64,000 nucleotides of DNA, taken from NCBI GenBank assembly GCA_950097015.1, contig CATNEN010000030.1, positions 3,410,001-3,474,000 of the forward strand, written 5' to 3'. Each line of letters starts with the position of its first letter. The first letter of the stretch is position 1. The notes below the pieces were generated by a model that ran no database searches, was not told where the DNA came from, and saw nothing but the letters and a program-made list of their open reading frames with translations. The translations under genes were made by a program, and so were the position numbers. Of the stretch, positions 1,228 through 38,123 are shown piece by piece. The stretch comes from Macrostomum hystrix. Lineage: Eukaryota; Animalia; Platyhelminthes.

Positions 1228-1689
1228 GAAGGTTAGAGCAATCTGCTTTCATTTATCGATTCTGAGTTGTGGAGGATGGCAGTCTAATAGTCCACTCACA
1301 CAAATGAGCCAGTATGGACAGGGCAGTCCACTTATTATATGCTGGCTGGAACTAGCTGTTTTGGCAATTCTCCGACTGCTTCATATTCCCTAATATAATA
1401 ATAATAATAATTCTCTAATAAAGACTGAAATAATTCACTCTTTGTGTACCTTACTTGTGTACAAGAGTTCTACTCAGAGATTTCAACAGTTCAGATAAAT
1501 TTCCTGTTTACCTGCATGGTCCTTCCACTTAAAACCAAAACTCATGAGGTTTTCAGTAAATATGACTGTAAAGTGATGTCTTGCGCTAAGAAGCAACAAG
1601 TGCTCAAACTTAGATTCTGCAATTGTATTGAAAGTTTTTTTAGCTCGCATGCAAAAGATAAATAATAAGTTTACCGGTTCTCGGAGACC

Positions 1690-2393: not shown

Positions 2394-2439
2394 AAGGGAC
2401 ATTTTGGATTTACGGTAGAACTACAAAGGGGTAAATCCC

Positions 2440-12253: not shown

Positions 12254-12646
12254 TTAGGGCGATTGAGTTTCGGCCACAGTGTCCGAGTCCTCAGTCGCGT
12301 CCTCTTCGCTGATGCCGACATCCTCTTCCTCCTCTTCGTCGTCCATCTCTTCGTCCTCTTCTTCCTCCTCGTCATCTTCTTCTTCTTCCTCTTCCTCTTC
12401 GTCCTCGTCGTTACCGGCGCCGTCTTCGTCCGAGGAGGCGCGCGAGCCGGAGGCGCCGGGCCGAGGGGCTGGCGCAGTCATGCGGCACAGCTGCTTGGCT
12501 GCGGCATTGAATTTGGCATTCAGCTGCGCCTCCAGCCGGCTGAGCAGCTCCTCCTCGTTGACGGGCCCGTCTGGATCAAACCAGCAGTGGCTGGCTAGCG
12601 GGGGCTGGGCCTCCGAGAACAGCGTGGCGGTTGGTAGGCCGGCCAT
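12254..12646 (-). CDS. ANAPC15: Anaphase-promoting complex subunit 15-like, 130 aa
   Basis: TLFSEAQPPLASHCWFDPDGPVNEEELLSRLE resembles the APC15 N-terminus as I recall it (LFPSLFPR..LWFNLDRPCVEETELQQQE), followed by the typical long Asp/Glu tail. AATAAA on the minus strand at 12132-12137. Confidence 0.7.
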   Translation of the reverse strand: MAGLPTATLFSEAQPPLASHCWFDPDGPVNEEELLSRLEAQLNAKFNAAAKQLCRMTAPAPRPGASGSRASSDEDGAGNDEDEEEEEEEEDDEEEEEDEEMDDEEEEEDVGISEEDATEDSDTVAETQSP

Positions 12647-12694
12647 TTATCACAGTCAGGACAGCTGCTGCAGCACAGTCGGTCAGTAAGGGAA

Positions 12695-12702
12695 CTAGAA
12701 AA
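12695..12702 (-). promoter_or_regulatory. Candidate (trans-)splice acceptor TTTTCTAG upstream of ANAPC15
   Basis: ttttggaattttctag lies 48 nt before the ATG, immediately after the 28-bp array. Confidence 0.45.
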
Positions 12703-12719
12703 TTCCAAAAATCTTATCT

Positions 12720-12990
12720 AAATGAGATCTGATCCCACAAAATCTCATTCTCTAGACTGATCCCACAAATCTCATTCTCTAGATTGATCCCACAAAATCT
12801 CATTCTCTATACTGATCCCACAAAATCTCATTCTCTAGATTGATCCCACAAAATCTTATTCTCTAGACTGATCCCACAAAATCTCATTCTCTAGACTGAT
12901 CCCACAAAATCTTATTCTCTAGACTGATCCCACAAAATCTCATTCTCTAGACTGATCCCACAAAATCTCATTCTCTAGACTGATCCTACG
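12720..12990. repeat. 28-bp minisatellite
   Basis: Unit tctagactgatcccacaaaatctcattc, about 9-10 copies. Confidence 0.95.
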
Positions 12991-13371
12991 AATTAAATCT
13001 CAACTTTTAGACTTTTACTGACGGCAAACAAACTTTTATGAGGCAAGCTTTTCTTATGACATTCGCTGGTAAAAGTTTAATAACGAATTTGTTACAAAGG
13101 CAGCTCATAAAAATGGGCAAATTTCAATGAATTCAATATATTTAACTCCAATGTTGTTTAACAAATGCAAGATCGTTAGTTAAGCTACAAGTACAATCCT
13201 TTAATGCATATTTGCTAACATATAGAGAGTAGCCTTAATAGACAAACAAGCAAAATGACGTTTTGATTGAGAAAGATCGCAAAGGTATAGTTCAAATAAG
13301 GCCAAAGTACATTCTCAATTGGCCTGTCCACATTCAACAGACTTGGTCCATTTTTTTATCTGAATTATTCT

Positions 13372-13816
13372 CTGACCTGACACCCTCTCATGATCCTCTC
13401 TGACACCCTATGATCCTCTGCCACCCCATGATCCTCTCTGACACCCCATGATCCTCTCTGACAGCCTATGATCGTCTGACAACCCATGATCCTCTCTGAC
13501 ACTCTATGATCCTCTCTGACACCCCATGATCCTCTCTGACACTCTATGATCCTCTCTGACACCCCATGATCCTCTCTGACACCCCATGATCCTCTCTGAC
13601 AGCCTATGATCGTCTGACAACCCATGATCCTCTCTGACACTCTATGATCCTCTCTGACACCCCATGATCCTCTCTGACAGCCTATGATCCTCTGCCACCC
13701 CATGATCCTCTCTGACACCCCATGATCCTCTCTGACACCCCATGATCCTCTCTGACACTCTATGATCCTCTCTGACACCCCATGATCCTCTCTGAAACCC
13801 TATGATCCTCTCTGAC
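13372..13816. repeat. 20-bp minisatellite directly after the COA7 stop codon
   Basis: Unit atgatcctctctgacacccc. Confidence 0.95.
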
Positions 13817-13818
13817 CA

Positions 13819-14808
13819 TCAACGTTTCTCCCATTTGCGTTGCTGAATCTTGGCATACTGCATGTACTGTCCATACTCCGAGGCCATGTCCTTAGCCCGC
13901 TGGGTCAGCCTGTCGGCCTCCTCGGGGTCCTTCGGCCCGCCATCGCCGCGCCGCATCATTACGGATAGGAGGCCGCAGCCGGCACCGTCGCCCACGTCGC
14001 AGGCGGTGCCAGCCAGCTGGCGAGCTTCGACAGTCCGGCCGGCCTGAATGTACTCCAGGGCGGCGCTGACGCAGGCGACCCCGGCGCCGTCGCGCTCGCC
14101 GGGGCCGAGGCATGCCCGACGGAGCATGGACAGGCCGGACTCCAGGTTGTCGCCGCCACTGCCGCCAGCACGGCCGGCGCGCAGACGAATGCGCCCGAGA
14201 CTGAGGCAGGAGCGTCTAGAGCCGTTAAAAAATTGGCCAGTCTTAGTGACAAGATAAGTCGAAATTACACATAACCCAGTTGGGCCAGGTGTACAGTCAG
14301 TGGCTCTGACATTGGTCTGATCTGAAATTGGCCTGACAGTCCAACCCCGCTGATCTGACATTGGCCTGACAGTCCAACCTGCTGATCCGACATTGGCCTA
14401 CCTGTGCTGCAGCTCATTGCAGGCCCTATCATAGTATTTCTCAGCTTCGGCGGAGTCGCAGTCGGGATGTGGCGGAGCTACAGTGGGATGGTCTCGCGGC
14501 CCATTCATCTTATAATTGGCGTACTTGAAGCAGCTCTCAGCGAAGCCGTGCTTGTCGCAATTGTACTTGAAGGCTTTGGCGCCTTCGGCAGGCAGTTTGC
14601 GCCACATGGAAAGCCACTGGCCGAGAGAATGGCAGGCGTCTTTGTTGCCGTCCTGGTAGCAGGCGTAGCTAAACTGGAAGCCGCGCTCACGCATCTGCTC
14701 CACAAGCTCATCCTCAGACTTCAGCTCCATCAGGCCGTGGTCCGGCCCGGCCGGGTCGTAGTCAGCGATGACGTCAGCTTCATCGGAGTCTTTTGAGGAT
14801 TTCGACAT
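13819..14808 (-). CDS. COA7: Cytochrome c oxidase assembly factor 7 (Sel1-like repeat protein), two exons (14808-14402, 14215-13819), 267 aa
   Basis: FSYACYQDGNKDACHSLGQWL...AFKYNCDKHGFAESCFKY...ACDVGDGAGCGLLSVMMRRGDGGPKDPEEADRL matches the COA7 pattern. The phase-2 intron AG|gtaggc...ctctag|A joins the two track ORFs in frame. Confidence 0.88.
14295..14398. repeat. Short tandem duplication inside the COA7 intron
   Basis: ctgacattggcctgacagtccaacc repeated about 3 times. Confidence 0.7.
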
Positions 14809-14819
14809 GCTCTTTCGGG

Positions 14820-14826
14820 CTGAAAA
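14820..14826 (-). promoter_or_regulatory. Candidate (trans-)splice acceptor TTTTCAG 11 nt upstream of the COA7 ATG
   Basis: Minus strand reads ccctcagttttcag|cccgaaagagcATG. Confidence 0.6.
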
Positions 14827-14857
14827 CTGAGGGATTATTCAAAACAGACTTTAGATA

Positions 14858-17125
14858 GATGCTACTGAGGGATGATGCAACTGAGGGATGATGCTACTGA
14901 GGGATGATGATACTGAGGGATGATGCTACTGAGGGATGATGCAACTGAGGGATGATGCTACTGAGCGATGATGCTACTGAGGGATGATGCTACTGAGGGA
15001 TGATGCTACTGAGCGATGATGCTACTGAGGGATGATGCTACTGAGGGATGATGCTACTGAGGGATGATGCTACTGAGGGATGATGCTACTGAGGGATGAT
15101 GCTACTGAGGGATGATGCTACTGAGGGATGATGCTACTGAGGGATGATGCTACTGAGGGATGATGATACTGAGGGATGATGCTACTGAGGGATGATGATA
15201 CTGAGGGATGATGATACTGAGGGATGATGCTACTGAGGGATGATGCTACTGAGGGATGATGCTACTGAGGGATGATGCTACTGAGCGATGATGCTACTGA
15301 GGGATGATGCTACTGAGGGATGATGCTACTGAGGGATGATGCTACTGAGGGATGATGCTACTGAGGGATGATGCTACTGAGGGATGATGCTACTGAGGGA
15401 TGATGCTACTGAGGGATGATGATACTGAGGGATGATGCTACTGAGGGATGATGATACTGAGGGATGATGCTACAGAGGGATGATGCTACTGAGGGATGAT
15501 GCAACTGAGCGATGATGCTACTGAGGGATGATGCTACTGAGGGATGATGCTACTGAGCGATGATGCTACTGAGGGATGATGCTACTGAGGGATGATGCTA
15601 CTGAGGGATGATGCTACTGAGGGATGATGCTACTGAGCGATGATGCTACTGAGGGATGATGCTACTGAGGGATGATGCTACTGAGGGATGATGCTACTGA
15701 GGGATGATGCTACTGAGGGATGATGCTACTGAGGGATGATGCTACTGAGGGATGATGCTACTGAGGGATGATGCTACTGAGGGATGATGATACTGAGGGA
15801 TGATGCTACTGAGGGATGATGATACTGAGGGATGATGATACTGAGGGATGATGCTACTGAGGGATGATGCTACTGAGGGATGATGCTACTGAGGGATGAT
15901 GCTACTGAGCGATGATGCTACTGAGGGATGATGCTACTGAGGGATGATGCTACTGAGGGATGATGCTACTGAGGGATGATGCTACTGAGGGATGATGCTA
16001 CTGAGGGATGATGCTACTGAGGGATGATGCTACTGAGGGATGATGATACTGAGGGATGATGCTACTGAGGGATGATGATACTGAGGGATGATGCTACAGA
16101 GGGATGATGCTACTGAGGGATGATGCAACTGAGCGATGATGCTACTGAGGGATGATGCTACTGAGGGATGATGCTACTGAGCGATGATGCTACTGAGGGA
16201 TGATGCTACTGAGGGATGATGCTACTGAGGGATGATGCTACTGAGGGATGATGCTACTGAGGGATGATGCTACTGAGGGATGATGCTACTGAGGGATGAT
16301 GCTACTGAGGGATGATGCTACTGAGGGATGATGATACTGAGGGATGATGCTACAGAGGGATGATGATACTGAGGGATGATGATACTGAGGGATGATGCTA
16401 CAGAGGGATGATGCTACTGAGGGATGATGCTACTGAGGGATGATGCTACTGAGCGATGATGCTACTGAGGGATGATGCTACTGAGGGATGATGCTACTGA
16501 GCGATGATGCTACTGAGGGATGATGCTACTGAGGGATGATGCTACTGAGGGATGATGATACTGAGGGATGATGCTACTGAGGGATGATGCTACTGAGGGA
16601 TGATGCTACTGAGCGATGATGCTACTGAGGGATGATGCTACTGAGGGATGATGCTACTGAGGGATGATGCTACTGAGGGATGATGCAACTGAGGGATGAT
16701 GCAACTGAGGGATGATGCTACTGAGGGATGATGCTACTGAGGGATGATGCTACTGAGCGATGATGCTACTGAGGGATGATGCTACTGAGGGATGATGCTA
16801 CTGAGGGATGATGCTACTGAGGGATGATGCTACTGAGGGATGATGCTACTGAGGGATGATGCTACTGAGCGATGATGCTACTGAGGGATGATGCTACTGA
16901 GGGATGATGCTACTGAGGGATGATGCTACTGAGGGATGATGCTACTGAGGGATGATGCTACTGAGGGATGATGCTACTGAGGGATGATGCTACTGAGGGA
17001 TGATGCAACTGAGGGATGATGCTACTGAGGGATGATGCTACTGAGGGATGATGCTACTGAGGGATGATGCTACTGAGGGATGATGCTACTGAGGGATGAT
17101 GCAACTGAGGGATGATGCTACTGAG
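14858..17125. repeat. 16-bp minisatellite, ~140 copies
   Basis: Unit ctgagggatgatgcta with recurring variants (gata, gcaa, gagcg). Confidence 0.97.
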
Positions 17126-17220
17126 GGCAGATGTTGCTGAGGGATGGTGCAACTAAGGGATGATGCTACTGAGGGCAGATGTTGCTGAGGGATGGTGCAA
17201 CTGAGGGCATGTTCAATGAG

Positions 17221-17460
17221 GACACTGAGGGCAGATGACACTGAGGACAGATGACACTGAGGGCAGATGACACTGAGGGCAGATGACACTGAGGGCAGAT
17301 GACACTGAGGGCAGATGACACTGAGGGCAGATGACACTGAGGACAGATGACACTGAGGGCAGATGACACTGAGGGCAGATGACACTGAGGGCAGATGACA
17401 CTGAGGGCAGATGACACTGAGGGCAGATGAAACTGGTGGCAGATGTTACTGAGGGCAGAT
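17221..17460. repeat. Sister 16-bp minisatellite
   Basis: Unit gacactgagggcagat, which shares ctgaggg with the adjacent array. Confidence 0.93.
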
Positions 17461-18131
17461 AGTTCAATTGATTGCTAGTAAACTTGTAAACAATATTCAC
17501 TAGAAGTTAATAGTACAATAGGAACGATGCAGAAGCGAAGAAAAAGGCCGCAATAGTTGTTTATAAAATCTATTAAAAGATCAGCAAAGTCAGTGCTGCG
17601 TAAAGATCATATTTGATCAGTTTGCAGTCATTGAACTTTTAAAGATGTACGCTCGTATTCGATTGAATTGGGAATGCTAAGATTCAGTTGAGAATCAGAA
17701 TGATAGGCGCCAGACAAAATTAAAATGTCTAGTTGAGAAGAACTCTTGAATTCACAGGCATATGCGTTTCTAATGATTAAATTTGTTACGAAAATATGAA
17801 ACAAAAAAAGAGAAATAGGAAAATCCTATACTTAATTATTTCTATATAGTATTGACTTATGATCAGATTATTGATCTTTGTGTTCTAATTAAGGGATATT
17901 TGGGTATGCGACTTAGCTTCATTGTGGCAATCAGAATTAACAAAACAGTAACAAAATTCCAAGAATTGTATATGCATCAAGATTACACAATAATTTACAA
18001 TAGTAATCAACTCCGAAATAGAACATCTGATAGCATACTACTGGCGATCACTACTCACATTGGCACACCAAATAAATCAAACTCTTAGTTTAGGTCTTTG
18101 TTTATCGTAGCAGAATTATAAGGCTGAAAGA

Positions 18132-21100
18132 TCACTTGGAGGACTTGGCCTGGCTGTAGAACTCCATCAGTGCGTAGGGGGGTATATAGAGCTCCAGCTT
18201 CTTCATTGGCACGCTTGATAAGAAGCAGTAGTCGCGCAGAAATACCAGTGTATTCACCAGATCGGCCGGATACTCCGGAGTCTTGGCCCTGCGACAGAGA
18301 GCGACAGAAAATGGGACATTAGAGTGATAGTGATAAAGTACTGATTTGAGTACGAATTCTTTAACCAATTTATCCTGCTCTTTAAACAATCAAATGAATA
18401 CGTTATTATAAATAAAAATACTTGATTACACCTGGCCCAATGGGGTCAGATGTGCAACCGACAGCACAGCCGCAGCTATTGCGTAGGGCATCTAAAGGCT
18501 GCGTACGGCTGTTCAGTCCATGGACTGGAAAAAACGCCACACCTACCCTCAATCGTTCCAGTGGAGTCAGGAATCGAACCCCCGACCTTCACGTCGTGAG
18601 AGTTCGAAGTTGCAATTTCTAGGCTAAAATCCCTCTAACCTAATAATAATAATTTTTTAAAGTGGAATGTGGGCATTAGCACATAGTTTAGTGACATTTG
18701 GTGATCTGGAGGCAACTACGAGGCAGTTCTGCCAATTCCGATAATCACTGAGCACACACTCACACAGGTGAGTACATGTGCCTTGACTGTCCTATTGTCA
18801 GGCAGTGCACATTATCACTGTGCCTTGGAGGCTTGGAGGCTTGGGGCGTAAATTGCACGACAAGCCCCCAAGCCTTTTCTCCGCAGCTGCGCCCCTAAAA
18901 CGAATGCGGCCTCGCCGCGGAATCGAGCTCAGGGCTGAGATTGGAACTTCAGATCCAAGGTGAACTCACTGTGGCAGCTGGTCCAGTTGAGAGCGCACCA
19001 GTTTGCCCAGCATTGCCAGCAGGTCATCCTGACTGTCCGAGTGGAACTGTCGCATCACGGTCACGCAGCCGGCCGTAAACGGCATACCATCGATGGTGCC
19101 GGGCCGCCTGGCTGTGAGGGTGGTGACGGACTTGTCAAATTGCAGAGCCTGCACAGCTCCGGTGATGGCTAGCAGCATCAGGGCTGGAATCAGCGGCTGG
19201 CTCTGAGTGGTCACGTAGATCTTGCTTAGCGGCTCGTGCATGCCTGCCATTGACAAGTGTTGGTTTGATCAACAGTTTGAGCATGAGCAACTGTTCTCTC
19301 ATCTGAATCAGCTCAGCCACAGCCACAGAGAGAGACTTGGCCGGCTTGCCGTGCAATTTACACCCTTGAGGGCCAACCTCCAAGGCACAGTGAGATTCTA
19401 CACTGCCTGGCGATTAGAAAGTCAGGGCAGATGTACACACCTATGTGAGTGCGTGTGCGCTCAAGAGTCAGCGAAATGTGCATAATTGCCTCCTCGCTGG
19501 CTGCAAGTCTACTGGCATACTGCCATTGCCCACAGCCCTCCGGTATATAACTTTGTTATTAAGTGCAAGACTACCTAATCTACTTTAATAACTAGAGTTC
19601 GAATCTACATCGCATGGACAAATGGAAGAGAAAGCTTGGCTAATCTCTAAGGGCTGACACGCAACAGATAGGAGATACTCAGTGGGAACTCAAATCCCCG
19701 AAATTCGTACCACTGGCCTCCAAGAATGAGACGACCTCGAACAGCAGGTCATTGTCCTCTGCCGGATACGGCTTACTGGGATCTCTGTAGTGCTCGTGAA
19801 TCTCGGCCAGCAGCGAGTCGTTGAGCGAACGCAGTACAGCGTGCATGCCCTTGGAGTTGAGCCTGGAGGAGCGGCACAGCTGGCCGGCCAGTTGCCTTCT
19901 GAGCAGCTGCAGCTGGCCAACCCGCAGAAGGCTGTCCGTCAGCTGCTGCAGCTGGCGCTGAAGCCGGCTGGAGGCGCCCGACAGCAGCTTGGCCGGGGCC
20001 TGTCCGGCAGGCAGCAGGCCGTCCAGCGGGCGCATGGACTCGGCCAGGCCAGTCAGCTGATCAACAGCCAGCTTGTCGTTGATCACGTGACGCCTGTACT
20101 GGCGCAGCAGAGTCTGCAACGAGCTGACCAGCATGAAACTCAGCAGCCGGTCTAGGCCAGACAGTCCGAAGCTGTCTAACGCGGTCTCCATGGCAATCCA
20201 GATGCGGGAGTCCAGTACCTCCTGGCGCGACTTCGCATCGTACCAGGCGGCCATCTGGTCTATGTAAACCGTCTGCTTGGGATCCGTGACGCGCAGCAGT
20301 TCGGTTGCTAGGCGACCAATAAAATTGACAGCACGATCGCCGGGCGGAGGTGCAAACTTTGGAATCGGGATGGCTTTAGACTGGTACACGGACTGGAAGT
20401 CCTGCACCTTCTCGCGCAGGAAACTGTTGCACTCCTGCTCCACGTTATAGTTGATGATGCGGCTCACCTGCGTGTGAGTGATTGGCTCATTAAAACTAGT
20501 TTAAGCTAACGCTACTAAAATATTTGGTCTCGTAATTTTAGATCAGAGTTCACTAAATATATCACCATGCTAGTATCGTTTGTGTTCCGTACTGTGTTAG
20601 ACCATATTATCTACTAGATATCTACCATATTATCTACTAGATATCTACCATATTATCTACTAGATTAGATTATCTACCCGATATCTACCATATACTTGTA
20701 CCATATCTTGTACTTGTACTTGTCATAAATTTTTGTAAGCGCACCTCCTCCTGCCAGATCTTGAGTCCGTAGATGTTCACATAGTCCTGAATGTACTCGA
20801 AGGACCTACGAAAGCCGTCCATTCGCTCGCCAAGGGTCAGCAGCCGGCTCTGCAGCTCGTTGGCTCTGCCAGCCTTGGGGTTGGCTGGAAAGATGAGCGC
20901 CTCGTGCAGCGCGAAAGCCACCTGAGCTACCAGCTCCTTGCGAATGCCATCCTCCAGCAGCTTCTGCGGATCCAGCTTCACAATGCCAACTAGAGTGGTC
21001 TTCATCGCCAGGATGCCTTCGCTGAATGTTGAGATCTCGTGGGTCAGCTGGGATACCTGGTAGCGCTCATCAAGCATGCCGTAGTCCTTCACCTTGTCTT

Positions 21101-24100
21101 TGTCTAGGCGAGTTGGCAGCTCCTTCAGTTTGTGCGTCTGAATGCCGATAATCTCTGCCAGCCGCTTGAACATGGTCTTGGGGATTACCTGCGGATGATG
21201 GCAGAACAGGGAGGCCTGGCTACCTTAAAATACCATTCTGTTACCATTGTGACAGGCATGCTAGAAATGGTATGCGGATGCTAGAAATGATATCTGGATG
21301 CTAGAAATGGTATCTGAATGCTAGAAATTATACCTGAATGCTAGAAATGGTACCTGAATGCTAGAAATGGTATCTGAATACTAGGAATGGTATCTGAATG
21401 CTAGAAATGATATCTGAATGCTAGAAATGGTATCTGAATGCTATAAATGGTATCTGAATGCTAGAAATGATATCTGAATGCTAGAAATGATACCTGAATG
21501 CTAGAAATGATATCTGAATACTAGGAATGGTATCTGAATGCTAGAAATGGTATCTGAATGCTAGAAATGGTATCTGAATGCTAGAAATGGTATCTGAATG
21601 CTAGAAATGATATCTGAATGCTAGAAATGGTATCTGAATACTAGGAATGGTATCTGAATGCTAGAAATGGTATCTGAATGCTAGAAATGGTATCTGAATG
21701 CTAGAAATTATACCTGAATGCTAGAAATGGTATCTGAATACTAGGAATGGTATCTGAATGCTAGAAATGGTATCTGAATGCTAGAAATGGTATCTGAATG
21801 CTAGAAATGATATCTGAATGCTAGAAATGGTATCTGAATGCTAGAAATTGTATCTGAATGCTAGAAACAATATCTGAATGCTAGAAACAATATCTGAATG
21901 CTAGAAATGGTATCTGAATGCTAGAAATGATATATGGATGCTAGAAATGACATATGGATGCTAGAAATGATATATGGATGCTAGAAATGATATCTGAATG
22001 CTAGAAATGACATATGGATTCTAGAAATGATAAGCGGATGCTAGAAATGATTTTCCATAATCTCAAAATAGTTGGGATTTCCCATATAAAATGACGATGA
22101 TTTTCATAAAACACAGGGAATTTACTATTAAATAAATTGAGATCTCCCATTAAATAATCTTTCTGGGATTTCCTTTTTAAAATGATGGCATATTCAGATT
22201 AGATGGTTGGGATTTCCGAATAAAATGATTGAGATTTAATTAGAGATAACTGGCATCCAGATAAAAATGGTACCTAAATTCATGAATTGCATTCCAGCGC
22301 TATAGATGAGCTCTACGCGTTAACCAATAGGAAATGGTAATGAATGAATTCGAAACGAATAGTCTGCATACCTGAAGCACTTTTCGCACATAGGTAACGA
22401 GTTCGGCTGAGTAGTACTGGCTAACACTAGCCAGATCTGGGCTATTAGCCTGGCTAATCCTAAGCAGCGGCTGTTCCATAGCTGTGGCCAGCTTCAAGAA
22501 CATGGCCTTGAGCTGAATGGTGATGCGTGGATTCCGTTGGATTCCAGCCTGCATGAAGTTGGTGTAGGTGTCAATGATCACCCAGGCGTAGCTGAGATCA
22601 GCAACAATGTCCAGATGGAGCAGCACTTCCTCCTTGACATTGATAATGCGCATCATCTGGTAGAGCTTGGCGCAGGTCTCCTGAAGGAACTGCACCACCT
22701 GCATGTTGGCATCTAACTGGTGAAATTCTTGCACCTCGCGCAGCGCCTGCATTAGCTGGTCCACCTTGCGGCCGGATTCGGTGGCGTTGGCAAAGTCCAG
22801 CTTGTCCACCTGCGGGAATGCGCAATAAATAACTAGTGCTCTAATTACACTTCATGCACATAATTTTTTTTAAGTTAGACGCTGGTTGTAGCCTAGTGGA
22901 GCATAGGACTCTCGACTTGAAGGTCGGGGGTTCGATTTCCGACTCCACTGGAACAATTTGCAAGACACTTAACTCTGGATTAAAATCTGGGTACCCCATT
23001 TAATAATATAATTGCTTAATTTTATATAATATTAACATTTAATATAACATTTAATATAATATTGCTTCAGTTTACCCAGATTTTAAATGGGTATCAGCAT
23101 CATCTTTGGCAATTGAGGATGGTGTGGCGTCCCCCTAGTCCATGGAGTGTACAGCCGTACGCAGCCTTCAGAAGCGATGCGCAATAGCTGCGGCTGTGCT
23201 GTCGACTGCACATTGCCAAATTAGGCCAGTTTTAATTAATTATTTATTAAGCTAATATTAAAGTTTAAGGATGCCTTGATTCTCTTAGTCTATGGTCTAG
23301 ACCAGGGGTGGGTCTATTGCCCTGGCCCGGTCTCTCCTGTCTCATCTCCCCCCTTCCCCCCTCTTATTTCTTCCGTTCTTCCGGCCCGCTATCGAAGCGT
23401 ATAAAGTTTGAAAAGAAACTAACCTGAGCTGCCAAATTGGCGAACCAGTCCTGCAGTTTAGCATTGGCTGTCACCCTAGTCAAGGGTTTAGTGCCGCTAA
23501 ACACGTCGCTTAGCTCGCGCAAACGTTCCGAGCATTCTACTTTTAGTGCGGCCCAGGTGTTCTCCTTGCGGCTGAGAATACCTGGAAAGGTTTGTTATGG
23601 GAAGATAAGCGAGAGGTCAGGAGTTCGAATCGCAGCCCTTGGTGGGGGGCAATTTGAGTTCTTCAGTCAATTAATTTCCCATGGCTTCACTTCACTCAGT
23701 GGTATAAATTCGTTTAATAGTAATTTCGAGCATCTGGTTTGTGTTTTCGAATCGGCCTGCACACCTGTGAAGACCTCCTTGAGTCTAAACTCAAACTGAG
23801 CAGTCAGGAGCAGCAGCTGGAATAGCTGTTCTCCATTGAAGCGACTCTCGGTCATCACGGTGTCGCGCAATAGCCGGCAAAGTTTGGTACGCTCCTGGGG
23901 CGGCGACAGGGGCGTTGTGTGCAGCATCAGCCAGCGCAGCGTGACGTTGCAGTCGCGAGCAGCGTTTAACAACTGCGGCACACGGTCTAGCACCAGATTG
24001 TCAACTAGGACACCTTCCTTTAACATGTCGGCTGTGCGGCTGATCAGTTCGCTCACTTTGGCACCGTGCATTGTGGCCTGGGTTAGGGGTTGAAGGTACA

Positions 24101-25675
24101 GACCGTGATTTAGTTCGATTTTTTTATTCAGGATGTTGTAGCGTACAAGGCTAGAGCGTCGGACTTACGACTTAAAGGTCGGGGGTTCAATCCCGACTTC
24201 ACTGGAACAATTAGTGTTCATAAGCAAGAGACTCACAACTCTGCATTGCTTCAGCTCACCCAGCTGTTAAATGGGTACCAGCATTAGCTGGGGTAATGAT
24301 GGTGGGTGTGGCGTCTACCCAGTCCATGGACTGAACAGCCGTACGCAATAGCAATAGGTGTAACCAATTAATTAATAGTCTGATGCTTAGTCTACGCACT
24401 TAACATGAACTGGTCGTTACCAGCGAGGGCTAAATGATTATTGAGAGGTCTGGGACTTGAATCCCAGACCCAAAGGGGAAATTTTTTTCGAGGGGGCCGT
24501 GGGCACCGTCGAATCATTTTGGCGACGGTCGAAAGTACGCCAGCGAGGAGGCAATACTGGCATTCTACTGACTCGCAGCACAATAGCTGCGACTGTCACA
24601 AGCTGCACATTTGGCCCAACTGCGTTAAGTGGCATTTAGACACTATTATATCTAAGGCATAGGAATCTAAATGTAGGCATCCAAGGTATGATTCAACTCG
24701 CACCTGTCGTTTAGCATTGGCCGGAGCGGTGGAATTAGCCAATGCTTTAGCAGCAGCTTTGTATGGCTGCCAAGCTTCAGCTAGATTTACTAGCATGCCC
24801 ATGTGCAGCGATAGTACCCAATTGTCTGGAAAGAATTTGTCAACAATTTCTCTCATCTTGGCCTCCTCCAGGTGCAGCAGATCCGGGCTAAAAAAAAGAC
24901 ACACGTAGAGCATAGCGGCCTGATGGGCCAGGGCTGTGCTCCGATGCTCAGGAAATGGAAACGAAGCCACCATGCTGTAGACGTCGTCAGACCGCAGCCG
25001 GTCTATGACCATCTGGACAAATCGAGGACTGACGACCACCCGGCTGAAGTAGCTCTCCGGATATTTGGCGGGTCGGCGCGCATTCGGCGAGCTTGAGTCG
25101 TACTCCGTACTGCGGAGCAGTTTGCAAACGTCATCAATTAGTGTACTGCTACCGCTGGAGTGCCTGTAATAGGCCACTAATAGTCGTTCACGTAGTGGCC
25201 CGGGAAATTTAGCTTCCACAGTGAGCAGCATAACGCCGTACAAAGATAAAGATTCGCATAGCAACTGTTTTCCCTCTGGATTGAGTAGCACAGTCTCAAG
25301 CATCTGTTGAACGTAGATGCCATTCTCCAAGTCACTCAAATAAGTGTTTAGTTTGATGACGTAGCTATAGACACTCTCAAAGGTTTTATAGAAGCGGGTC
25401 AGAATTTCTATGTGATTCTCGCGAAATTCTTCGTCCAATTCCTGCAGATCGGCCCGGGATTGGATTTTGTTTTCGAAGAATTCCGGAGTTCGCAGGTACT
25501 CAAAATCGAAGATTATCTCGTGATAGCGCTGGCTCTCCGGATTTGTCTCCTGTTTGAATGCGTTTGGCACAAATGCAGACAAGTTTAACAATTCGGAGAT
25601 GATACTGGAGCCGCTGGATACAATCTTCAGCAGGTTGCGGCCGCAAAGATTGTTTTCGGCCAGAAAGTCGCTCAT
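18132..25675 (-). CDS. WASHC5: WASH complex subunit 5 (strumpellin), 8 exons, 1170 aa
   Basis: Exons 25675-24704, 24077-23765, 23581-23424, 22809-22372, 21188-20745, 20467-19711, 19243-18970 and 18288-18132 all have GT-AG introns with consistent phases (3,513 nt in total). Hallmarks: [45 protein letters not shown]. Confidence 0.95.
18440..18625 (-). mobile_element. tRNA-derived SINE in WASHC5 intron 7
   Basis: Reverse complement of the head (ggagtcaggaatcgaacccccgacc) and the core ctgttcagtccatggactgg. Confidence 0.75.
18745..18945. repeat. Dispersed repeat, second family (other copy at 38940-39130)
   Basis: cacacactcacac...ctgtgccttgg...aattgcacgacaagcc...ggcctcgc.gcggaatcgagctcaggg is present at both loci, both intronic. 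Confidence 0.7.
20605..20690. repeat. Short 23-bp tandem repeat in a WASHC5 intron
   Basis: tattatctactagatatctacca, about 3 copies. Confidence 0.75.
21254..22050. repeat. 20-bp minisatellite in WASHC5 intron 4
   Basis: Unit atgctagaaatggtatctga with degenerate edges. Confidence 0.95.
22880..23215 (+). mobile_element. tRNA-derived SINE in WASHC5 intron 3
   Basis: A-box tggttgtagcctagtgg, B-box ggttcgatttcc, body gcaagacacttaactctg...tttacccag...aaatgggtatcagca...agtccatgga. Confidence 0.8.
24135..24360 (+). mobile_element. tRNA-derived SINE in WASHC5 intron 1
   Basis: Same head and body as the 22880 copy. Confidence 0.8.
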
Positions 25676-25682
25676 CTGAAAA
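25676..25682 (-). promoter_or_regulatory. Candidate (trans-)splice acceptor TTTTCAG abutting the WASHC5 ATG
   Basis: Minus strand reads tcttaaacttttcag|ATGAGC. Confidence 0.65.
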
Positions 25683-25769
25683 GTTTAAGACATAAATGGA
25701 AAAAATATACTATTTTTTCTTAGCAAGACTATCCTAGACTATTGTCTAAGCGTTGTAGTAGGTCTGGGT

Positions 25770-27060
25770 TTTTGAGACAGATCATCGTAGTCTATGGTCG
25801 AAGTTGTGGGGAAGCTATCGGTTTATCTGAGACAGACCATCGTAGTCTATGGTCAAAGTTGTAGGAAGCTATCGGTTTATCTGAGACAGATCATCGTAGT
25901 CTATGGTCGAAGTTGTGGGGGAGCTATCGGTTTATCTGAGACAGACCATTGTAGTCTATGGTCGAAGTTGTGGGGGAGCTATCGGTTTATCTGAGACAGA
26001 CCATTGTAGTCTATAGTCGAAGTTGTGGGGAAGCTATCGGTTTATCTGAGACAGATCATCGTAGTCTATGGTCAAAGTTGTAGGAAGCTATCGGTTTATC
26101 TGAGACAGACCATTGTAGTCTATGGTCGAAGTTGTGGGGGAGCTATCGGTTTATCTGAGACAGACCATTGTAGTCTATGGTCGAAGTTGTGGGGGAGCTA
26201 TCGGTTTATCTGAGACAGACCATTGTAGTCTATAGTCGAAGTTGTGGGGAAGCTATCGGTTTATCTGAGACAGATCATCGTAGTCTATGGTCGAAGTTGT
26301 GGGGGAGCTATCGGTTTATCTGAGACAGATCATCGTAGTCTATGGTCGAAGTTGTGGGGGAGCTATCGGTTTATCTGAGACAGATCATCGTAGTCTATGG
26401 TCGAAGTTGTGGGGGAGCTATCGGTTTATCTGAGACAGATCATCGTAGTCTATGGTCGAAGTTGTGGGGGAGCTATCGGTTTATCTGAGACAGATCATCG
26501 TAGTCTATGGTCGAAGTTGTGGGGGAGCTATCGGTTTATCTGAGACAGATCATCGTAGTCTATGGTCGAAGTTGTGGGGGAGCTATCGGTTTATCTGAGA
26601 CAGATCATCGTAGTCTATGGTCGAAGTTGTGGGGGAGCTATCGGTTTATCTGAGACAGATCATCGTAGTCTATGGTCGAAGTTGTGGGGGAGCTATCGGT
26701 TTATCTGAGACAGATCATCGTAGTCTATGGTCGAAGTTGTGGGGGAGCTATCGGTTTATCTGAGACAGATCATCGTAGTCTATGGTCGAAGTTGTGGGGG
26801 AGCTATCGGTTTATCTGAGACAGATCATCGTAGTCTATGGTCGAAGTTGTGGGGGAGCTATCGGTTTATCTGAGACAGATCATCGTAGTATATGGTCGAA
26901 GTTGTGGGGGAGCTAACGGTTTATCTGAGACAGATCATCGTAGTCTATGGTCGAAGTTGTGGGGGAGCTATCGGTTTATCTGAGACAGATCATCGTAGTC
27001 TATGGTCGAAGTTGTGGGGGAGCTATCGGTTTATCTGAGACAGATCATCGTAGTATATGG
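25770..27060. repeat. 55-bp minisatellite between PRS and WASHC5
   Basis: Unit gagacagatcatcgtagtctatggtcgaagttgtgggggagctatcggtttatct, about 23 copies. Confidence 0.96.
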
Positions 27061-27512
27061 TACAAGCTATGATGAGGCTTCGGATTTTAACAAACTTATC
27101 TTAAAATATTAAGCAGACCATTAAAAAAACTAAATCCAGATTAAGAACGAATGACTAAATAAATATTAAAAATTTGTCAAGACACAGCAGGCCATGTCTT
27201 TTAGCTTAAAATTAAAATATTAGAAAGTAAAGACAGTAGAAGAAAATAATAAATAATTGTCGATGCATTGTCAAGAGAAAAAACTAATTAGAAAAGTCAC
27301 ATCAAACACAATTAATAGCTGTTAAGATTTTCGTCATTGCTAGAAAAAAACGGTAATCGCTTAGCAAACACTTTAAAAACTGAAATTAGCTCGTAGTAAG
27401 CATAAAAACTTTTGGAATGTACTCTTAGCTTATATAAAACAATCACTATAGCGCGAATTGCTTCAAGAAAGAAGCAATTAAAGAGAATAACAATGTAAAT
27501 GTCAGCGACTCG

Positions 27513-30500: not shown

Positions 30501-30753
30501 GTTCAAAAATGACAGCGGGCTCGTGCAGACTAGCCAGAAAAACGACATCCTGACCCGCCATTTGACGCACTTCGCTAATGAAAATATTAGGAAATCCGTC
30601 CGGAAATCGATCCCAGCTCACAATTTCTTTAAATAAGATGAGGCGACTTGTCTGGCTGGCGGCCGCTGAGACAGCGGAATGGTCAGCGATTTCCCGTGCC
30701 AGCTGGGTCATGGAGCTGTGTGCCAGCAGCCATAGCGGTTTCGCGCGCTCAGC
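27513..30753 (-). CDS. Class II (plant PRS3/PRS4-type) ribose-phosphate pyrophosphokinase, 4 exons; no in-frame ATG at the homologous N-terminus
   Basis: Exons 30753-30499, 29430-29032, 27978-27769 and 27662-27513 are all phase 0 with GT-AG introns. Motifs [71 protein letters not shown] and FWITDS match class II PRS. Confidence 0.9.
28740..29015 (-). mobile_element. tRNA-derived SINE in PRS intron 2
   Basis: Full reverse-complement copy of the SINE. The track ORF 28924-29430 merely reads past the splice donor into it. Confidence 0.8.
29500..30325. repeat. 47-bp minisatellite in PRS intron 1
   Basis: Unit gggatttcccactgaaatcatctggattctccattacaattaaggct. Confidence 0.95.
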
Positions 30754-30765
30754 CTTAGCGAATAA
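30754..30765 (-). promoter_or_regulatory. Candidate trans-splice acceptor ahead of the ATG-less first PRS exon
   Basis: Minus strand reads ttttataattttattcgctaag|GCT GAG CGC GCG AAA CCG, in frame with the PRS coding sequence. Confidence 0.55.
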
Positions 30766-30849
30766 AATTATAAAATTCAATGCCGAGCTTCATTGAAAAA
30801 GTTGTTTAATCAAAAAAATAGTTTACTTTATAGATTTACCGCCAATCAA

Positions 30850-31745
30850 TGGGCTAGATCTCGACCTCCCCAGTCTATGGGTTAGACCCGACCTCCCCAG
30901 TCTATGGGTTAGAACCGACCTCCCCAGTCTATGGGTTAGACCCGACCTCCCCAGTCTATGGGTTAGACCCGACCTCCCCAGTCTATGGGTTAGAACCGAC
31001 CTCCCCAGTCTATGGGTTAGAACCGACCTCCCCAGTCTATGGGTTAGACCCGACCTCCCCAGTCTATGGGTTAGACCCGACCTCCCCAGTCTATGGGTTA
31101 GAACCGACCTCCCCAGTCTATGGGTTAGAACCGACCTCCCCAGTCTATGGGTTAGACCCGACCTCCCCAGTCTATGGGTTAGAACCGACCTCCCCAGTCT
31201 ATGGGTTAGACCCGACCTCCCCAGTCTATGGGTTAGACCCGACCTCCCCAGTCTATCGGTTAGACCCGACCTCCCCAGTCTATGGGTTAGACCCGACCTC
31301 CCCAGTCTATGGGTTAGACCCGACCTCCCCAGTCTATGGGTTAGAACCGACCTCCCCAGTCTATGGGTTAGACCCGACCTCCCCAGTCTATGGGTTAGAA
31401 CCGACCTCCCCAGTCTATGGGTTAGACCCGACCTCCCCAGTCTATGGGTTAGACCCGACCTCCTCAGTCTATGGGTTAGACCCGACCTCCCCAGTCTATG
31501 GGTTAGACCCGACCTCCCCAGTCTATGGGTTAGAACCGACCTCCCCAGTCTATGGGTTAGACCCGACCTCCCCAGTCTATGGGTTAGAACCGACCTCCCC
31601 AGTCTATGGGTTAGACCCGACCTCCCCAGTCTATGGGTTAGACCCGACCTCCCCAGTCTATGGGTTAGACCCGACCTCCCCAGTCTATGGGTTAGATCCG
31701 AACTCCTGTCTATGGGTTAGACCCAGATTTCCCCAGTCTATGGGA
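30850..31745. repeat. 27-bp minisatellite between KIAA0753 and PRS
   Basis: Unit atgggttagacccgacctccccagtct. Confidence 0.96.
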
Positions 31746-31863
31746 AACTAAATCCTTAGTCTTAAAGCAATGTTTAAGTTTAGAATAAACAAGATAGAAA
31801 TCAACAAAAAATACTCAACCTCTTAATTATTGTTTCCCAATTCATGACCAAGGTAAAAAAAGT

Positions 31864-31869
31864 TTTATT
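31864..31869 (-). terminator. Candidate polyadenylation signal (AATAAA) of the KIAA0753-like gene
   Basis: tttatt on the plus strand, ~400 nt past the stop codon and ~120 nt before the satellite. Confidence 0.4.
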
Positions 31870-32274
31870 TACTAATTTTGGTAGAATAAGTTCAACTCAC
31901 AGCCAGCCACTGCAGGAATAGCCGCCACTATAAAATTATGTATCGTGTAAAATAATTGTTTCCAAAAATTACTACGAAAATAAAATAGAATCATTTTTAA
32001 TTGGATTAAAAATTGTGTAAGTATGAACAAACTAAAAGGAATGTTGGAAATTATAGCTAGAAATGATTTTAAAAGTAGACACAAACTTTTTTGCAACCGG
32101 TTGCAAAATTTACACAGATTTATTAGCAAAAAAATCGATAAAAAGTCAGCATAACGAATTAACTAAGATGAGAATACGCAGCTCCCTATTCTCTCATGCT
32201 TCTAGAAAATATTTTCTATGAAAAACTATAGAAAAAAAGTACGTTTCGTAGGTTAATTTAAGTAAAAAACTGTT

Positions 32275-33822
32275 TTATCTACTGTCGCCATTATCAGACG
32301 AGTGCTCAGATTCGAACTCCTGACTTCCATAGTCCACGCCGTCTTCTCCAGTTTTGCTATAATAATCCGCGGTTCGAACGTCGGCCTCTTCAGTCGGCGA
32401 ATAGCCGCCTGCGCGGGCGCCCAGGGCCGACAGAGCCGCCGCGGCGGCCGCCTCAGCGGCGCCAACTCCGGTCTCGTTGGCAACTAGATGGCCGACAATC
32501 GCGTCGCTGGCTGACAGAAGCTCGTCAGCGGCATCGGTCAGCATGTCATCTAGCAGCTGCTCGGCGATGGCGTCAGTCAGCTGAGTTGGCCGGAAGCCAA
32601 TAACGCCAGAATTGGCCACCGACGAGCCGGCGTTCAGGTAGTCCCGATAGCGATCCCGCTGCGACCGGATGGCCTGCACCTCCGCCTGCGTCAGCTGCAG
32701 CGCAGCCGGCTGCCTCGCGCCGGCCACTTCGACAGTGCTGCCAAAAACTGGAGCAGGTCTGGCGCCGTTACGATTGTTGACAAAGCGCAACCCGTCTGGC
32801 GGCTCGGCGCGCCAGTGTCCGTCAGCGGCGCAGATTGGCTCGTCGCCGGCGGCCAAAGCGGCGACCCAAGGGTCGCGAATGTCATCGCCTTCGGCCTCCA
32901 GCTGGCAGAGCCGGTGATCGATGTTGCGTAACTCGGCCAGGCTGCCAGCACCGCTGCGGATCAGCGACACCGCTGAGGCTGACAGTGCCGGAGTGCTGAA
33001 GCCGCCGCCGCCACGCAGGCCGAGCTCGCGCCTGATCTCGGCCAGAACATCGGCCACAATGCGGGCCCGGTCATGATCGGCTACCACCGGAGAAGCCGAG
33101 GACGCTGCGGCTTGGACTGCAGGGGGCGAAGCTCCCAAAGTTGGATTAAAGTGAGGCTGCTGTTGGATTTGCCTTTGCTGCTGTTGCTGCTGCCGCTGTG
33201 GCGGCGGGGGCAGCCCGACTCGCGGACTCCGCGGTCTGGTCGGGAACGGGAGAGCGGCCGGGCGGCGCCTGGCACCGGCGCCAGCGCCGCGTCCTAGAAG
33301 GCGCTCGGCCTCCAGCTCGGCCATGCGCGCCGCGTATTGTTGAACCTCCTCGCGCAGGCGCCGCAATTCCAAAGCTTCGTGACGCTTCATTGAGGCGGCA
33401 TTCTCGCGGGGTAACGGCAGCCTAGCGGAGCCGCCTCCATTTGGGCCGGGCCGCCAGGCTCGATCGGTATCTCGAACCGGCGGCGAATGACTGCGCGACG
33501 GCAATTGCTGCTGCTGCTGCTGCTTCTGTCGTCGCTGCTCAACCGCTGCCTTTCTAAAGATGGCGGTGCGGCCCTGATGGAGGCGACGTTCAACATTTTT
33601 AGGGCCGGGAGGTAGTTTGGCGTCCAGCACCTCCCGGCTGTGCTGGAGCTCGCGCCTGGCCAGCCGGCTCATGAGCTCCATGCGTTGCGGATCCAGGGCC
33701 GATGGTCGCTTCTCTATGAGCACTGGCTGCGGATTGACCGCCACCCTAGTAACCAGGTTGCTAGGCGAAGCCGGCCGGTCTAAATTAAACTGCAACTGGT
33801 TTACTGCCTGGCGCGGATTCAT
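32275..33822 (-). CDS. KIAA0753: Moonraker/OFIP (KIAA0753)-like centriolar protein, intronless, 515 aa
   Basis: N-terminal NQLQFNLDRPASPSNLVTRV...VLIEK...RLARREL and C-terminal RYRDYL...FRPTQLTDAIAEQLLDDMLTDAADEL resemble the two conserved ends of KIAA0753 as recalled. Confidence 0.78.
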   Translation of the reverse strand: MNPRQAVNQLQFNLDRPASPSNLVTRVAVNPQPVLIEKRPSALDPQRMELMSRLARRELQHSREVLDAKLPPGPKNVERRLHQGRTAIFRKAAVEQRRQKQQQQQQLPSRSHSPPVRDTDRAWRPGPNGGGSARLPLPRENAASMKRHEALELRRLREEVQQYAARMAELEAERLLGRGAGAGARRRPAALPFPTRPRSPRVGLPPPPQRQQQQQQRQIQQQPHFNPTLGASPPAVQAAASSASPVVADHDRARIVADVLAEIRRELGLRGGGGFSTPALSASAVSLIRSGAGSLAELRNIDHRLCQLEAEGDDIRDPWVAALAAGDEPICAADGHWRAEPPDGLRFVNNRNGARPAPVFGSTVEVAGARQPAALQLTQAEVQAIRSQRDRYRDYLNAGSSVANSGVIGFRPTQLTDAIAEQLLDDMLTDAADELLSASDAIVGHLVANETGVGAAEAAAAAALSALGARAGGYSPTEEADVRTADYYSKTGEDGVDYGSQEFESEHSSDNGDSR

Positions 33823-33833
33823 CCTTCAGTTGG

Positions 33834-33840
33834 CTGAAAG
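33834..33840 (-). promoter_or_regulatory. Candidate (trans-)splice acceptor CTTTCAG 11 nt upstream of the KIAA0753 ATG
   Basis: Minus strand reads cttttaatctctttcag|ccaactgaaggATG. Confidence 0.6.
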
Positions 33841-36800: not shown

Positions 36801-38123
36801 AGGCCTAGCCTAGCCTAGCAATGCCAGTTTTTGCTAGTAACAACAATAATGCCTGCTTAAAAAAATAAGATTAATAAACATAAAAAATAATTCATAAACT
36901 AAAAACATTGGCGACCATCTAAATATTGTACTTTTAAACTTTTACCATGGTATCACTTTTACACACCAAAGCTGACAAAGCTTGCAGAAAAAAGATCAAC
37001 ATATTAACTTTTAATTCGAGATATTTTAATTTAAATTATATATATTTTTTATATATTTAATTTAATATAATTTTAATTTTCAATTTTAGTTTAGATTGCA
37101 TATAGGCCAGCAAACTGTCTGCATACTATTTATAATGTACAATTTTCTCCCTATTAAACTTAATGTGGCGATTACAGACTTTAAGTCTGTAATTTACTAT
37201 CTTCTGCTGTTCATGGCTTGTTGAAGTTAGGCCTATATAGTGTCCTAGAAATCAAACATAAATGCAAAGCTTGAATTTGTTTCACAAAGAAACGTAATGA
37301 ATTAAACAAAGGATCAAATTGGCGGATGTCTTTTTTGATGCTTTGCGGTTTGTATCTTGGCAGCCAGAATCAGAATCATAACTTACGTCTGGAGCTTACT
37401 TTACAGTATAATCGTAGTTTTATTGTGGCTATCCTCTCGGCTCGGCCGAAGTCAGTAACTGCAGTCCTCCGCAGCTGTCCGTCTATGCAGCCTTCGTCTG
37501 CATAAGGTCGAGCTAAGCATTGCTAATCGAGTCTCTGAAGCGGCTGTCACAAGACTCGTAGCTATAAAGTCTATAAATAGTATCCGTGGATGTGCCGATG
37601 GCAGGATAAATGGCCTGCAAACTAGCTTCTCAGTAAATATATTCGAGATGAGATTCGAAAAGCTGATGCTAATTTACAGCCTAAAAATGATTTGAAGTCT
37701 TAATCAAACCATTTTGCTTTTCTTATTTAGTGGCTTAATGTTTGAAAATGCGCTGGATTAGACAGAGCCCGGCATTTTTGGGCTGCAGCGGCATGGCCAT
37801 CTCAAATTCTCTGATTCGCCCTCTTGTTTAATTATTACTGCTTTCAGTCACTATAGTTAAGGCATCTCCCATGCTTTTTGCAATCTTAAAAATAATTTTT
37901 GGCTTTCCTATAGCTCGTACTTTAGTGCCTTTTGTGTCAAATATTTCTATGGTACTATTTGCGTCTGATCTCTGTGTTTTTTCGGTGCATGTGTCTGCTG
38001 CGATATGATTTCAGCGGTAAAATTCCTAACGAGAAAGACCGGACTACCTCTTTTGATCATCAAGCGTAAACCTTGCGTTATTACTACTGGATCTCAATCA
38101 ATAAACTTATCAGTTAACCAGGC

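Follow-up and report, generated by a model that had tools for sequence, protein, structure and literature searches.

Five conserved genes of the flatworm Macrostomum hystrix, moonraker/KIAA0753-like, PRPP synthetase (PRS), WASHC5, COA7 and ANAPC15, follow one another in this order on the minus strand of the window (the whole 64,000-nt stretch of DNA analyzed here), according to Pfam and PDB searches. We consider it most likely, with a probability of roughly 0.6, that they form a conserved co-oriented block with spliced leader (SL)-capped mRNAs, which is probably an operon at least in part. Assembled RNA contigs showed SL trans-splicing of the two distal genes, COA7 and ANAPC15, and we infer it for the moonraker-like, PRS and WASHC5 mRNAs.

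Gene content and genomic setting

The gene models and the region upstream of the block are as follows (positions are those of the window).

32275..33822, minus strand: gene 1, moonraker/KIAA0753-like, single exon, 515 aa
27516..30753, minus strand: gene 2, PRPP synthetase-like, four coding exons (30753-30499, 29430-29032, 27978-27769, 27662-27516)
18132..25675, minus strand: gene 3, WASHC5/strumpellin, multi-exon, stop codon 18132-18134
13819..14808, minus strand: gene 4, COA7 CDS, two exons (14808-14402, 14215-13819)
12254..12646, minus strand: gene 5, ANAPC15, single coding exon, 130 aa, acidic tail
33841..38123, no strand: AT-rich region (GC ~0.35-0.37) from the divergent BTB gene to gene 1

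All five assignments of the initial annotation, which had placed these genes on one strand, gained support from Pfam or PDB, the moonraker/KIAA0753 match being weak. The similarity is very strong for WASHC5, where four exon ORFs match PF10266 at 1.6e-137, 3e-74, 1.4e-63 and 1.5e-61. The best PDB match of COA7 exon 1 is human COA7 (7MQZ, E 3e-9), and ANAPC15 scores 28 bits against a Pfam cut-off of 27. Membership of gene 2 in the PRPP synthetase family is supported by matches of its exon 3 to PF00156 (37.6 bits) and to ribose-phosphate pyrophosphokinases in PDB (1e-10), and by the M. lignano orthologue, which carries PF13793 and PF00156. Its first intron harbors a 47-mer array (29495-30322), and its second a SINE-like element. 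The protein of gene 1 is 65% identical to M. lignano BOX15_Mlig005211g1 and matches PF15718 (MNR) at 23.5 bits, under the Pfam gathering cut-off of 27 and in N-terminal residues 5-44 only; we assign it to the moonraker/KIAA0753 family tentatively.

Neighboring genes of the block are adjacent and co-oriented, and no conserved opposite-strand gene was found within 12254-33840. The block is flanked by genes of the opposite strand, a RING-like gene (plus strand, 10403 onwards) and BTB genes (plus strand, 38124 onwards). A single operon promoter would have to lie in the AT-rich region 33841..38123, where blastn against M. lignano found no nucleotide conservation except one 73-nt piece. Searches for tRNAs and Rfam RNAs within 11-39 kb and for an SL RNA gene within the window gave no hits.

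The main alternative, which we regard as fairly unlikely, is that the five genes are independent, each with its own promoter in a 1.1-3.3-kb spacer and a short outron replaced by the SL, their order representing ordinary congeneric synteny. In favor of it, a same-strand run has a chance of about 6% by orientation alone, and the published estimate for M. lignano is that most SL-spliced genes (~60%) lie outside operons (PMC8629364).

Confirmed and predicted spliced leader acceptors

The RNA evidence consists of assembled contigs from four public runs (X1, X5, X6, X7) of two studies, examined over 11500-14857. Together with the predicted acceptors of the three proximal genes, it defines the following features.

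14827..14833, minus strand: SL acceptor of COA7, CCCTCAG; SL tails at 14827 in X5, X6, X7 and X1
12695..12702, minus strand: SL acceptor of ANAPC15, TTTTCTAG; SL tails at 12695 in X5 and X6
13114..13818, minus strand: probable COA7 3' UTR, through a 20-mer array (13389-13816) to ~13114
25676..25682, minus strand: predicted acceptor TTTTCAG, adjoining the WASHC5 ATG
30754..30758, minus strand: predicted PRS acceptor CTAAG, adjoining the first PRS codon (GCT)
33834..33840, minus strand: predicted acceptor CTTTCAG, 11 nt 5' of the moonraker-like ATG

The same SL tail is found on COA7 and ANAPC15. Its reverse complement, TGCGAAGACTCAATTTATTGCAT, equals the 3' portion of the SL published for M. lignano (PMC8629364), and the SL of M. 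hystrix ends in …CTCAATTTATTGCATG. The COA7 exon starts at 14826, and the AUG of the SL shares the reading frame of the COA7 ATG (18 nt, no stop). The ANAPC15 exon starts at 12694, and a second acceptor of this gene, CTGCAG at 12668, is SL-joined in run X1. Since the leader is joined directly at 12695 and 14827, COA7 and ANAPC15 have no upstream exon; the initial annotation had identified none for any gene of the block. The five acceptor strings that it listed were all found in place, and the SL tails join ANAPC15 at the predicted position 12695; its COA7 acceptor, TTTTCAG at 14820, has to be replaced, as the RNA contigs place the SL junction 7 nt upstream, at 14827. The COA7 intron 14216-14401 is removed in three SL-tailed runs, with the joint 14215/14402, so the contigs are RNA. 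The COA7 3' UTR probably reaches ~13114, as judged by contigs covering 13114-13396 and by smaller ones within the array, with depths like those of the COA7 exons, although assembled contigs do not fix where the RNA really ends. This leaves a spacer of ~420 nt before the ANAPC15 acceptor, or ~160 nt after subtraction of a 28-mer array. No contig bridges a gap and no precursor RNA is present among them, as independent genes would have it; this absence is nevertheless uninformative, because the contigs likewise miss the COA7 intron.

Acceptor motifs beside the ATGs of the block are enriched over background: YTNCAG ends 0-21 nt 5' of the start codon in four of the five genes, compared with 6% of all same-strand ATGs. 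The PRS acceptor, AAG, is weaker than the other four, and the corresponding position in M. lignano lacks an AG. No ATG lies upstream in the PRS reading frame, so that an AUG contributed by the SL would be in frame. In M. lignano, an SL-like 14-mer (12 of 14 positions identical) abuts the WASHC5 ATG at the same spot where TTTTCAG immediately precedes ATG in the window, and this apparent remnant lends indirect support to trans-splicing at the predicted WASHC5 acceptor.

Intergenic gaps and tandem arrays

Each of the four gaps, numbered from the moonraker-like gene to ANAPC15, contains tandem repeats.

30842..31744, no strand: gap 1 minisatellite, 27-mer x 33
25773..27061, no strand: gap 2 minisatellite, 55-mer x 23.5
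14858..17460, no strand: gap 3 satellites, 16-mer x 147 (14858-17207) and a related 16-mer x 15 (17221-17460)
12729..12986, no strand: gap 4 minisatellite, 28-mer x 9, in the remaining ~420-nt spacer; contig depth almost nil

The stop-to-acceptor distances in gaps 1-4 are 1521, 1840, 3304 and 1123 nt, and fall to 618, 551, 714 and 437 nt after subtraction of the TRF arrays; the latter values are upper bounds because they are measured from the stop codon. The shortening of the gaps without their satellites, described in the initial annotation, is thus reproduced (1.1-3.3 kb to 0.44-0.71 kb). Such short repeat-subtracted spacers argue against five independent genes, above all in gap 4, where the ~160 nt from the probable COA7 3' end to the acceptor fall within the published operon mode, a repeat-adjusted spacer of ~100 bp in M. 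lignano (PMC8629364). It is probable that at least one adjacent pair is co-transcribed, COA7 and ANAPC15 being the best candidate; that all five genes constitute one transcription unit is a more tentative proposal, about which we are doubtful.

The raw spacers of 1.1-3.3 kb leave room for promoters, which counts against an operon.

Tandem arrays make up 24% of the whole window and are therefore not specific to the gaps of the block; satellites as an operon-specific trait were accordingly rejected.

A second alternative, which appears unlikely, is a chain of at least two shorter units, for example moonraker-PRS-WASHC5 and COA7-ANAPC15, with an internal promoter in gap 3 (18131-14828, 714 nt unique). 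C. elegans provides a precedent, since its operons are known to include hybrid ones with internal promoters. Gap 3 is also the largest one (3.3 kb in the window, 4.4 kb in M. lignano), and two-gene operons account for three quarters of those called in M. lignano (PMC8629364). On the other hand, gap 3 still lies under the 1-kb repeat-adjusted threshold used in that species, and the internal promoter is without positive evidence.

Comparison with M. lignano

The initial annotation had suggested examining gene order in related flatworms. The five genes and the divergent BTB gene are collinear on a single M. lignano contig, NIVC01004564.1, in the order BTB (minus strand), moonraker, PRS, strumpellin, COA7, ANAPC15, with protein identities of 58-95%. 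The synteny takes in the flanking opposite-strand genes and hence is not operon-specific, as would be expected for independent genes. Moreover, the NCBI names of the moonraker and ANAPC15 orthologues in M. lignano make each of them g1 of a separate transcriptional unit (Mlig005211 and Mlig015732), which favors either independent genes or a chain of shorter units. The M. lignano transcriptional units are split at repeats, according to the authors (PMC8629364). A literature search with the two unit names gave no match, and no documentation of the operon status of this block was found in the texts on M. lignano operons that were consulted. COA7 exon 1 had no match in a word-based protein search. 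Exact look-ups of the ANAPC15 and moonraker-like proteins in public assemblies gave no match either, which sets the genome apart from the annotated M. lignano assembly; the species is a different one from M. lignano strain DV1.

Blastn alignment with M. lignano recovered only exons and one SINE-like element, and no conserved non-coding sequence in the gaps; the lack of conserved gap sequence, such as conserved promoters might show, is a weak argument against independent genes. Arrays are present in all four gaps of both species, and their repeat units are unrelated in sequence. Homology of the satellites was rejected, as equal-period units compared in their best rotation are no more alike than shuffled sequences. 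The CDS starts of the NCBI annotation of M. lignano were also rejected as proxies for SL sites, being shifted by -9 to +47 nt relative to the ATGs, with no preceding AG.

Relation to known operons

In M. lignano, operons of 2-9 genes were called by location on the same strand, SL splicing of the downstream gene and a distance below 1 kb, from which TRF and RepeatMasker repeats are subtracted before the threshold is applied (Ustyantsev & Berezikov 2021, PMC8629364). In the block, all five genes are adjacent in the same orientation, the SL is present on the downstream genes COA7 (14827) and ANAPC15 (12695/12668), and each of the four gaps is shorter than 1 kb without repeats (437-714 nt). Since the published procedure already corrects for repeats, the earlier suggestion that such a block could escape distance-based operon finders is not new. 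The block shares with the M. lignano SL operons (Wudarski et al. 2017, PMC5730564; PMC8629364) the last 24 nt of the SL (a figure that includes the final G common to SL and genome), the type of acceptor just 5' of the ATG, co-stranded conserved housekeeping genes, and repeat-swollen spacers that drop below 1 kb once repeats are subtracted; it differs in the separate unit names of its first and last orthologues. Conserved housekeeping genes are enriched among SL-spliced and operon genes of M. lignano.

Operons of parasitic flatworms of the same phylum (Schistosoma, cestodes) are likewise SL-resolved polycistrons called by proximity and downstream SL (PMC12582326). The thresholds in these studies are 300 bp or less, at which the block would fail if repeats were not subtracted, and chimeric gene models whose spacers measure several kilobases were noted (PMC12582326).

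The block resembles C. elegans operons in its functionally unrelated genes, and the Macrostomum spacer mode is also ~100 nt once repeats are removed. Operons of C. elegans, reportedly treated by Blumenthal and Gleason in 2003, comprise co-transcribed unrelated genes, with upstream 3'-end formation coupled to downstream SL trans-splicing. However, a dedicated SL2-type leader and raw spacers of ~100 nt characterize C. elegans, whereas Macrostomum has a single SL, with the same tail on COA7 and ANAPC15, and the minisatellite-filled raw spacers of the block (1.1-3.3 kb) exceed those of C. elegans 10-30 times in length. Another difference is the AUG at the end of the Macrostomum SL, which can supply a start codon or extend one.

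Possible mode of expression

If the block is an operon, transcription by RNA polymerase II would begin in the AT-rich stretch that separates the moonraker-like gene from the divergent BTB gene, and would continue into the downstream genes. Cleavage and polyadenylation would complete each upstream mRNA, and SL addition at the acceptor just 5' of the start codon would cap the next cistron as it is released. Co-transcription would make this a five-gene operon conserved across Macrostomum species and a convenient test case for polycistronic transcription that tolerates kilobases of intercistronic tandem repeats. Repeat-inflated SL-resolved operons have already been published for M. lignano, so the gain is at the level of annotation: exact SL sites for two genes, ANAPC15 and COA7, a 3' UTR that carries a satellite, and corrections to the gene models.

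In the same scheme, the minisatellites would have expanded neutrally in 3' UTRs and spacers, as everywhere in the genome. That they are instead working parts of the polycistron, either reserve or decoy banks of 3' splice sites or a means of slowing Pol II for 3'-end cleavage and SL addition, seems highly improbable. Both RNA-confirmed acceptors sit in what seem to be decayed units at the ends of the neighboring arrays: CCCTCAG of COA7 follows the gap 3 array, whose ~160 16-mer units each contain CCCTCAG (in gene orientation), and TCTAG of ANAPC15 follows the 28-mer array, whose units hold TCTAG.

Gene content of the block

Five protein-coding genes were found on the minus strand between 12254 and 33840, in line with the co-orientation proposed in the initial annotation, and plus-strand genes bound the block. 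The window has a G+C content of ~46%, and tandem arrays make up 24% of its 64 kb.

Genes of the block and its bounds
33822-32275, minus strand: gene 1, moonraker/KIAA0753-like; single exon, 515 codons
30753-27516, minus strand: gene 2, PRPP-synthetase-like (PRS); four exons
25675-18132, minus strand: gene 3, WASHC5/strumpellin; multi-exon, four of the exon ORFs scoring E 1e-61 to 1e-137
14808-13819, minus strand: gene 4, COA7; two exons, top PDB match human COA7 (7MQZ), E 3e-9
12646-12254, minus strand: gene 5, ANAPC15; 28 bits (cut-off, 27)
from 10403, plus strand: RING-like gene bounding the block
from 38124 and from 39429, plus strand: BTB genes bounding the block

The N-terminus of gene 1 scores 23.5 bits against Pfam 'moonraker' (KIAA0753), under the threshold of 27. 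The exons of PRS, WASHC5 and COA7 were searched singly; PRS exon 3 matches PF00156 (37.6 bits) and ribose-phosphate pyrophosphokinases of the PDB (~1e-10), and the M. lignano PRS orthologue has both PF13793 and PF00156. The final exon and stop codon of WASHC5 were located by comparison with M. lignano, the source of the closest database proteins (58% identity for ANAPC15, 65% for moonraker; at the exon level, 77% for COA7 and 90-95% for strumpellin). Proteins of the window had no exact database counterpart, which points to a Macrostomum-like species distinct from the annotated M. lignano DV1 assembly.

Spliced leader addition at COA7 and ANAPC15

All five predicted acceptor strings are present at their predicted positions. 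In four of the five genes, the YTNCAG motif published for trans-splicing ends 0-21 nt before the start codon, against a background of 6% of all same-strand ATGs; the PRS acceptor is AAG only, without YTNCAG.

Contigs of four runs were aligned to 11500-14857; three of the runs are of organism C (study P2), the fourth is of organism A (study P1). Each organism C run lacks the COA7 intron (14216-14401, GT..AG, minus strand), which identifies these three runs as RNA. The loose tails at contig ends read, in reverse complement, TGCGAAGACTCAATTTATTGCAT. This corresponds to the 3' portion of the 35-nt spliced leader (SL) published for M. lignano; the last G of the leader falls on the G of the genomic acceptor. 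COA7 and ANAPC15, two genes of the block, are thus shown to undergo SL trans-splicing. At both, the tails join a bare acceptor, as had been proposed for every gene of the block. In ANAPC15 the junction lies at the predicted 12695, between TTTTCTAG and TTCC; in run X1 the tail joins an alternative CTGCAG (12668) instead. In COA7 it lies, in 4/4 runs, at 14827, between CCCTCAG and TTTTCAGCCC, 7 nt upstream of the predicted and better-looking TTTTCAG, which is not used. A leader AUG joined at 14827 shares the reading frame of the COA7 AUG (18 nt without a stop, 14809-14827) and, if used, would add seven residues to COA7; joined at the predicted site, it would be out of frame.

Each RNA-supported acceptor lies in what seems to be a degenerate end unit of the adjoining array: CCCTCAG in that of the 16-mer array (region 14827-14900), TCTAG in that of the 28-mer array (region 12695-12760). 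The arrays thus carry many acceptor-like strings.

Predicted starts of WASHC5 and PRS

At the position homologous to the WASHC5 acceptor (TTTTCAG, 25676), M. lignano has no acceptor. Its genome there reads CAATTAAATGCATG (20629-20642 of the orthologous stretch) followed by ATGAGC. This 14-mer equals the 3' end of the leader at 12 of 14 positions and adjoins the WASHC5 ATG exactly where the leader of the window species would join; it is the sole such match in 21.6 kb, with 0.24 expected anywhere on both strands. It looks like the trace of a leader that may have entered the genome as a copy of a trans-spliced mRNA, and thereby suggests, from genomic sequence, ancestral trans-splicing at the WASHC5 acceptor.

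Upstream of the conserved N-terminal codons of PRS there is no in-frame ATG in either the window or M. lignano, and the nearest one in the window (30733; region 30733-30753) is out of frame. A leader AUG joined at the predicted CTAAG would be in frame. The homologous M. lignano spot lacks an AG.

Intergenic spacers and operon status

Gap lengths were taken from stop codon to acceptor, and TRF arrays were then subtracted. The predicted shrinkage on removal of satellites proved arithmetically correct: the measured distances fall from 1123-3304 to 437-714 nt.

Spacer lengths with and without TRF arrays
gap 1, moonraker > PRS: 1521 nt; 618 nt without arrays
gap 2, PRS > WASHC5: 1840 nt; 551 nt without arrays
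gap 3, WASHC5 > COA7: 3304 nt; 714 nt without arrays
gap 4, COA7 > ANAPC15: 1123 nt; 437 nt without arrays

In gap 4, RNA contigs cover 13114-13396 and lie within the 20-mer array at a depth like that of the COA7 exons. The COA7 3' UTR therefore probably runs through this array to ~13114, although contigs cannot fix RNA ends; from there to the ANAPC15 acceptor is approximately 420 nt, or 160 nt without the 28-mer array. This 20-mer minisatellite (13389-13816) directly follows the COA7 stop codon. Contig depth is almost zero in the spacer 12732-13067, but the COA7 intron, certainly transcribed, is equally silent (zero depth), so the silent spacer is uninformative on a precursor.

In M. lignano, precursors carrying several sites of trans-splicing have been described as 'transcriptional units' (Wudarski et al. 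2017, PMC5730564), and 15% of genes lie in operons of up to nine genes, with a spacer mode near 100 bp (Ustyantsev & Berezikov 2021, PMC8629364). That study found conserved genes enriched among SL-spliced genes, and repeats adding substantially to operon spacer length. It required the same orientation, an SL-spliced downstream gene and an intergenic distance <1 kb after subtraction of TRF and RepeatMasker repeats. The central idea of the initial annotation, that satellites inflate operon spacers so that distance-based finders could miss them, was therefore already published. Studies of parasitic flatworms used thresholds of 300 bp or less but noted several-kb spacers in chimeric gene models (PMC12582326). 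The block would qualify as an operon by the M. lignano criteria, provided that PRS and WASHC5 are SL-spliced.

Gene order and orientation are the same on M. lignano contig NIVC01004564.1 (GCA_002269645.1): BTB (minus), then moonraker > PRS (335 aa) > strumpellin (1161 aa) > COA7 > ANAPC15. All four gaps contain arrays there too, but built from units that are not related to the window's; at the nucleotide level, only exons and one SINE-like element are conserved. Because the flanking opposite-strand genes are also syntenic, the conserved order fits an operon without singling one out. By their NCBI names (Mlig005211g1 and Mlig015732g1), the M. lignano orthologues of genes 1 and 5 are assigned to different transcriptional units; units built from RNA-seq tend to break in repeat-rich spacers (Ustyantsev & Berezikov 2021, PMC8629364). 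The initial observation is thus largely borne out, with SL trans-splicing observed in two genes. Operon status is probable, though unproven: we favour co-transcription of at least one gene pair (probability roughly 0.65), a single unit of all five is a tentative reading, less likely than not, and separate promoters for all five genes appear unlikely.

Additional observations

M. lignano lacks the third PRS intron of the window (27663-27768); its counterparts of exons 3 and 4 lie in a single uninterrupted ORF (18053-18409 of the orthologous stretch). A SINE-like element occurs at 28752-29011 (PRS intron 2) and 18450-18600 (a WASHC5 intron); it contains a tRNA-like stretch that ARAGORN did not call and is 84-87% identical to an element of M. 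lignano (575-832 of that stretch). Relative to the window, organism C contigs have insertions of 34 nt (at 13329) and 9 nt (after 11582) and several SNPs in 11571-11920, probably allelic or strain differences. A 1132-nt RNA contig (runs X5 and X7; 11500-12315) begins within the ANAPC15 coding region, covers the 3' UTR and extends beyond 11500, towards the convergent plus-strand gene. A contig over two genes is not equivalent to a single transcript; the 3' ends of these genes may overlap.
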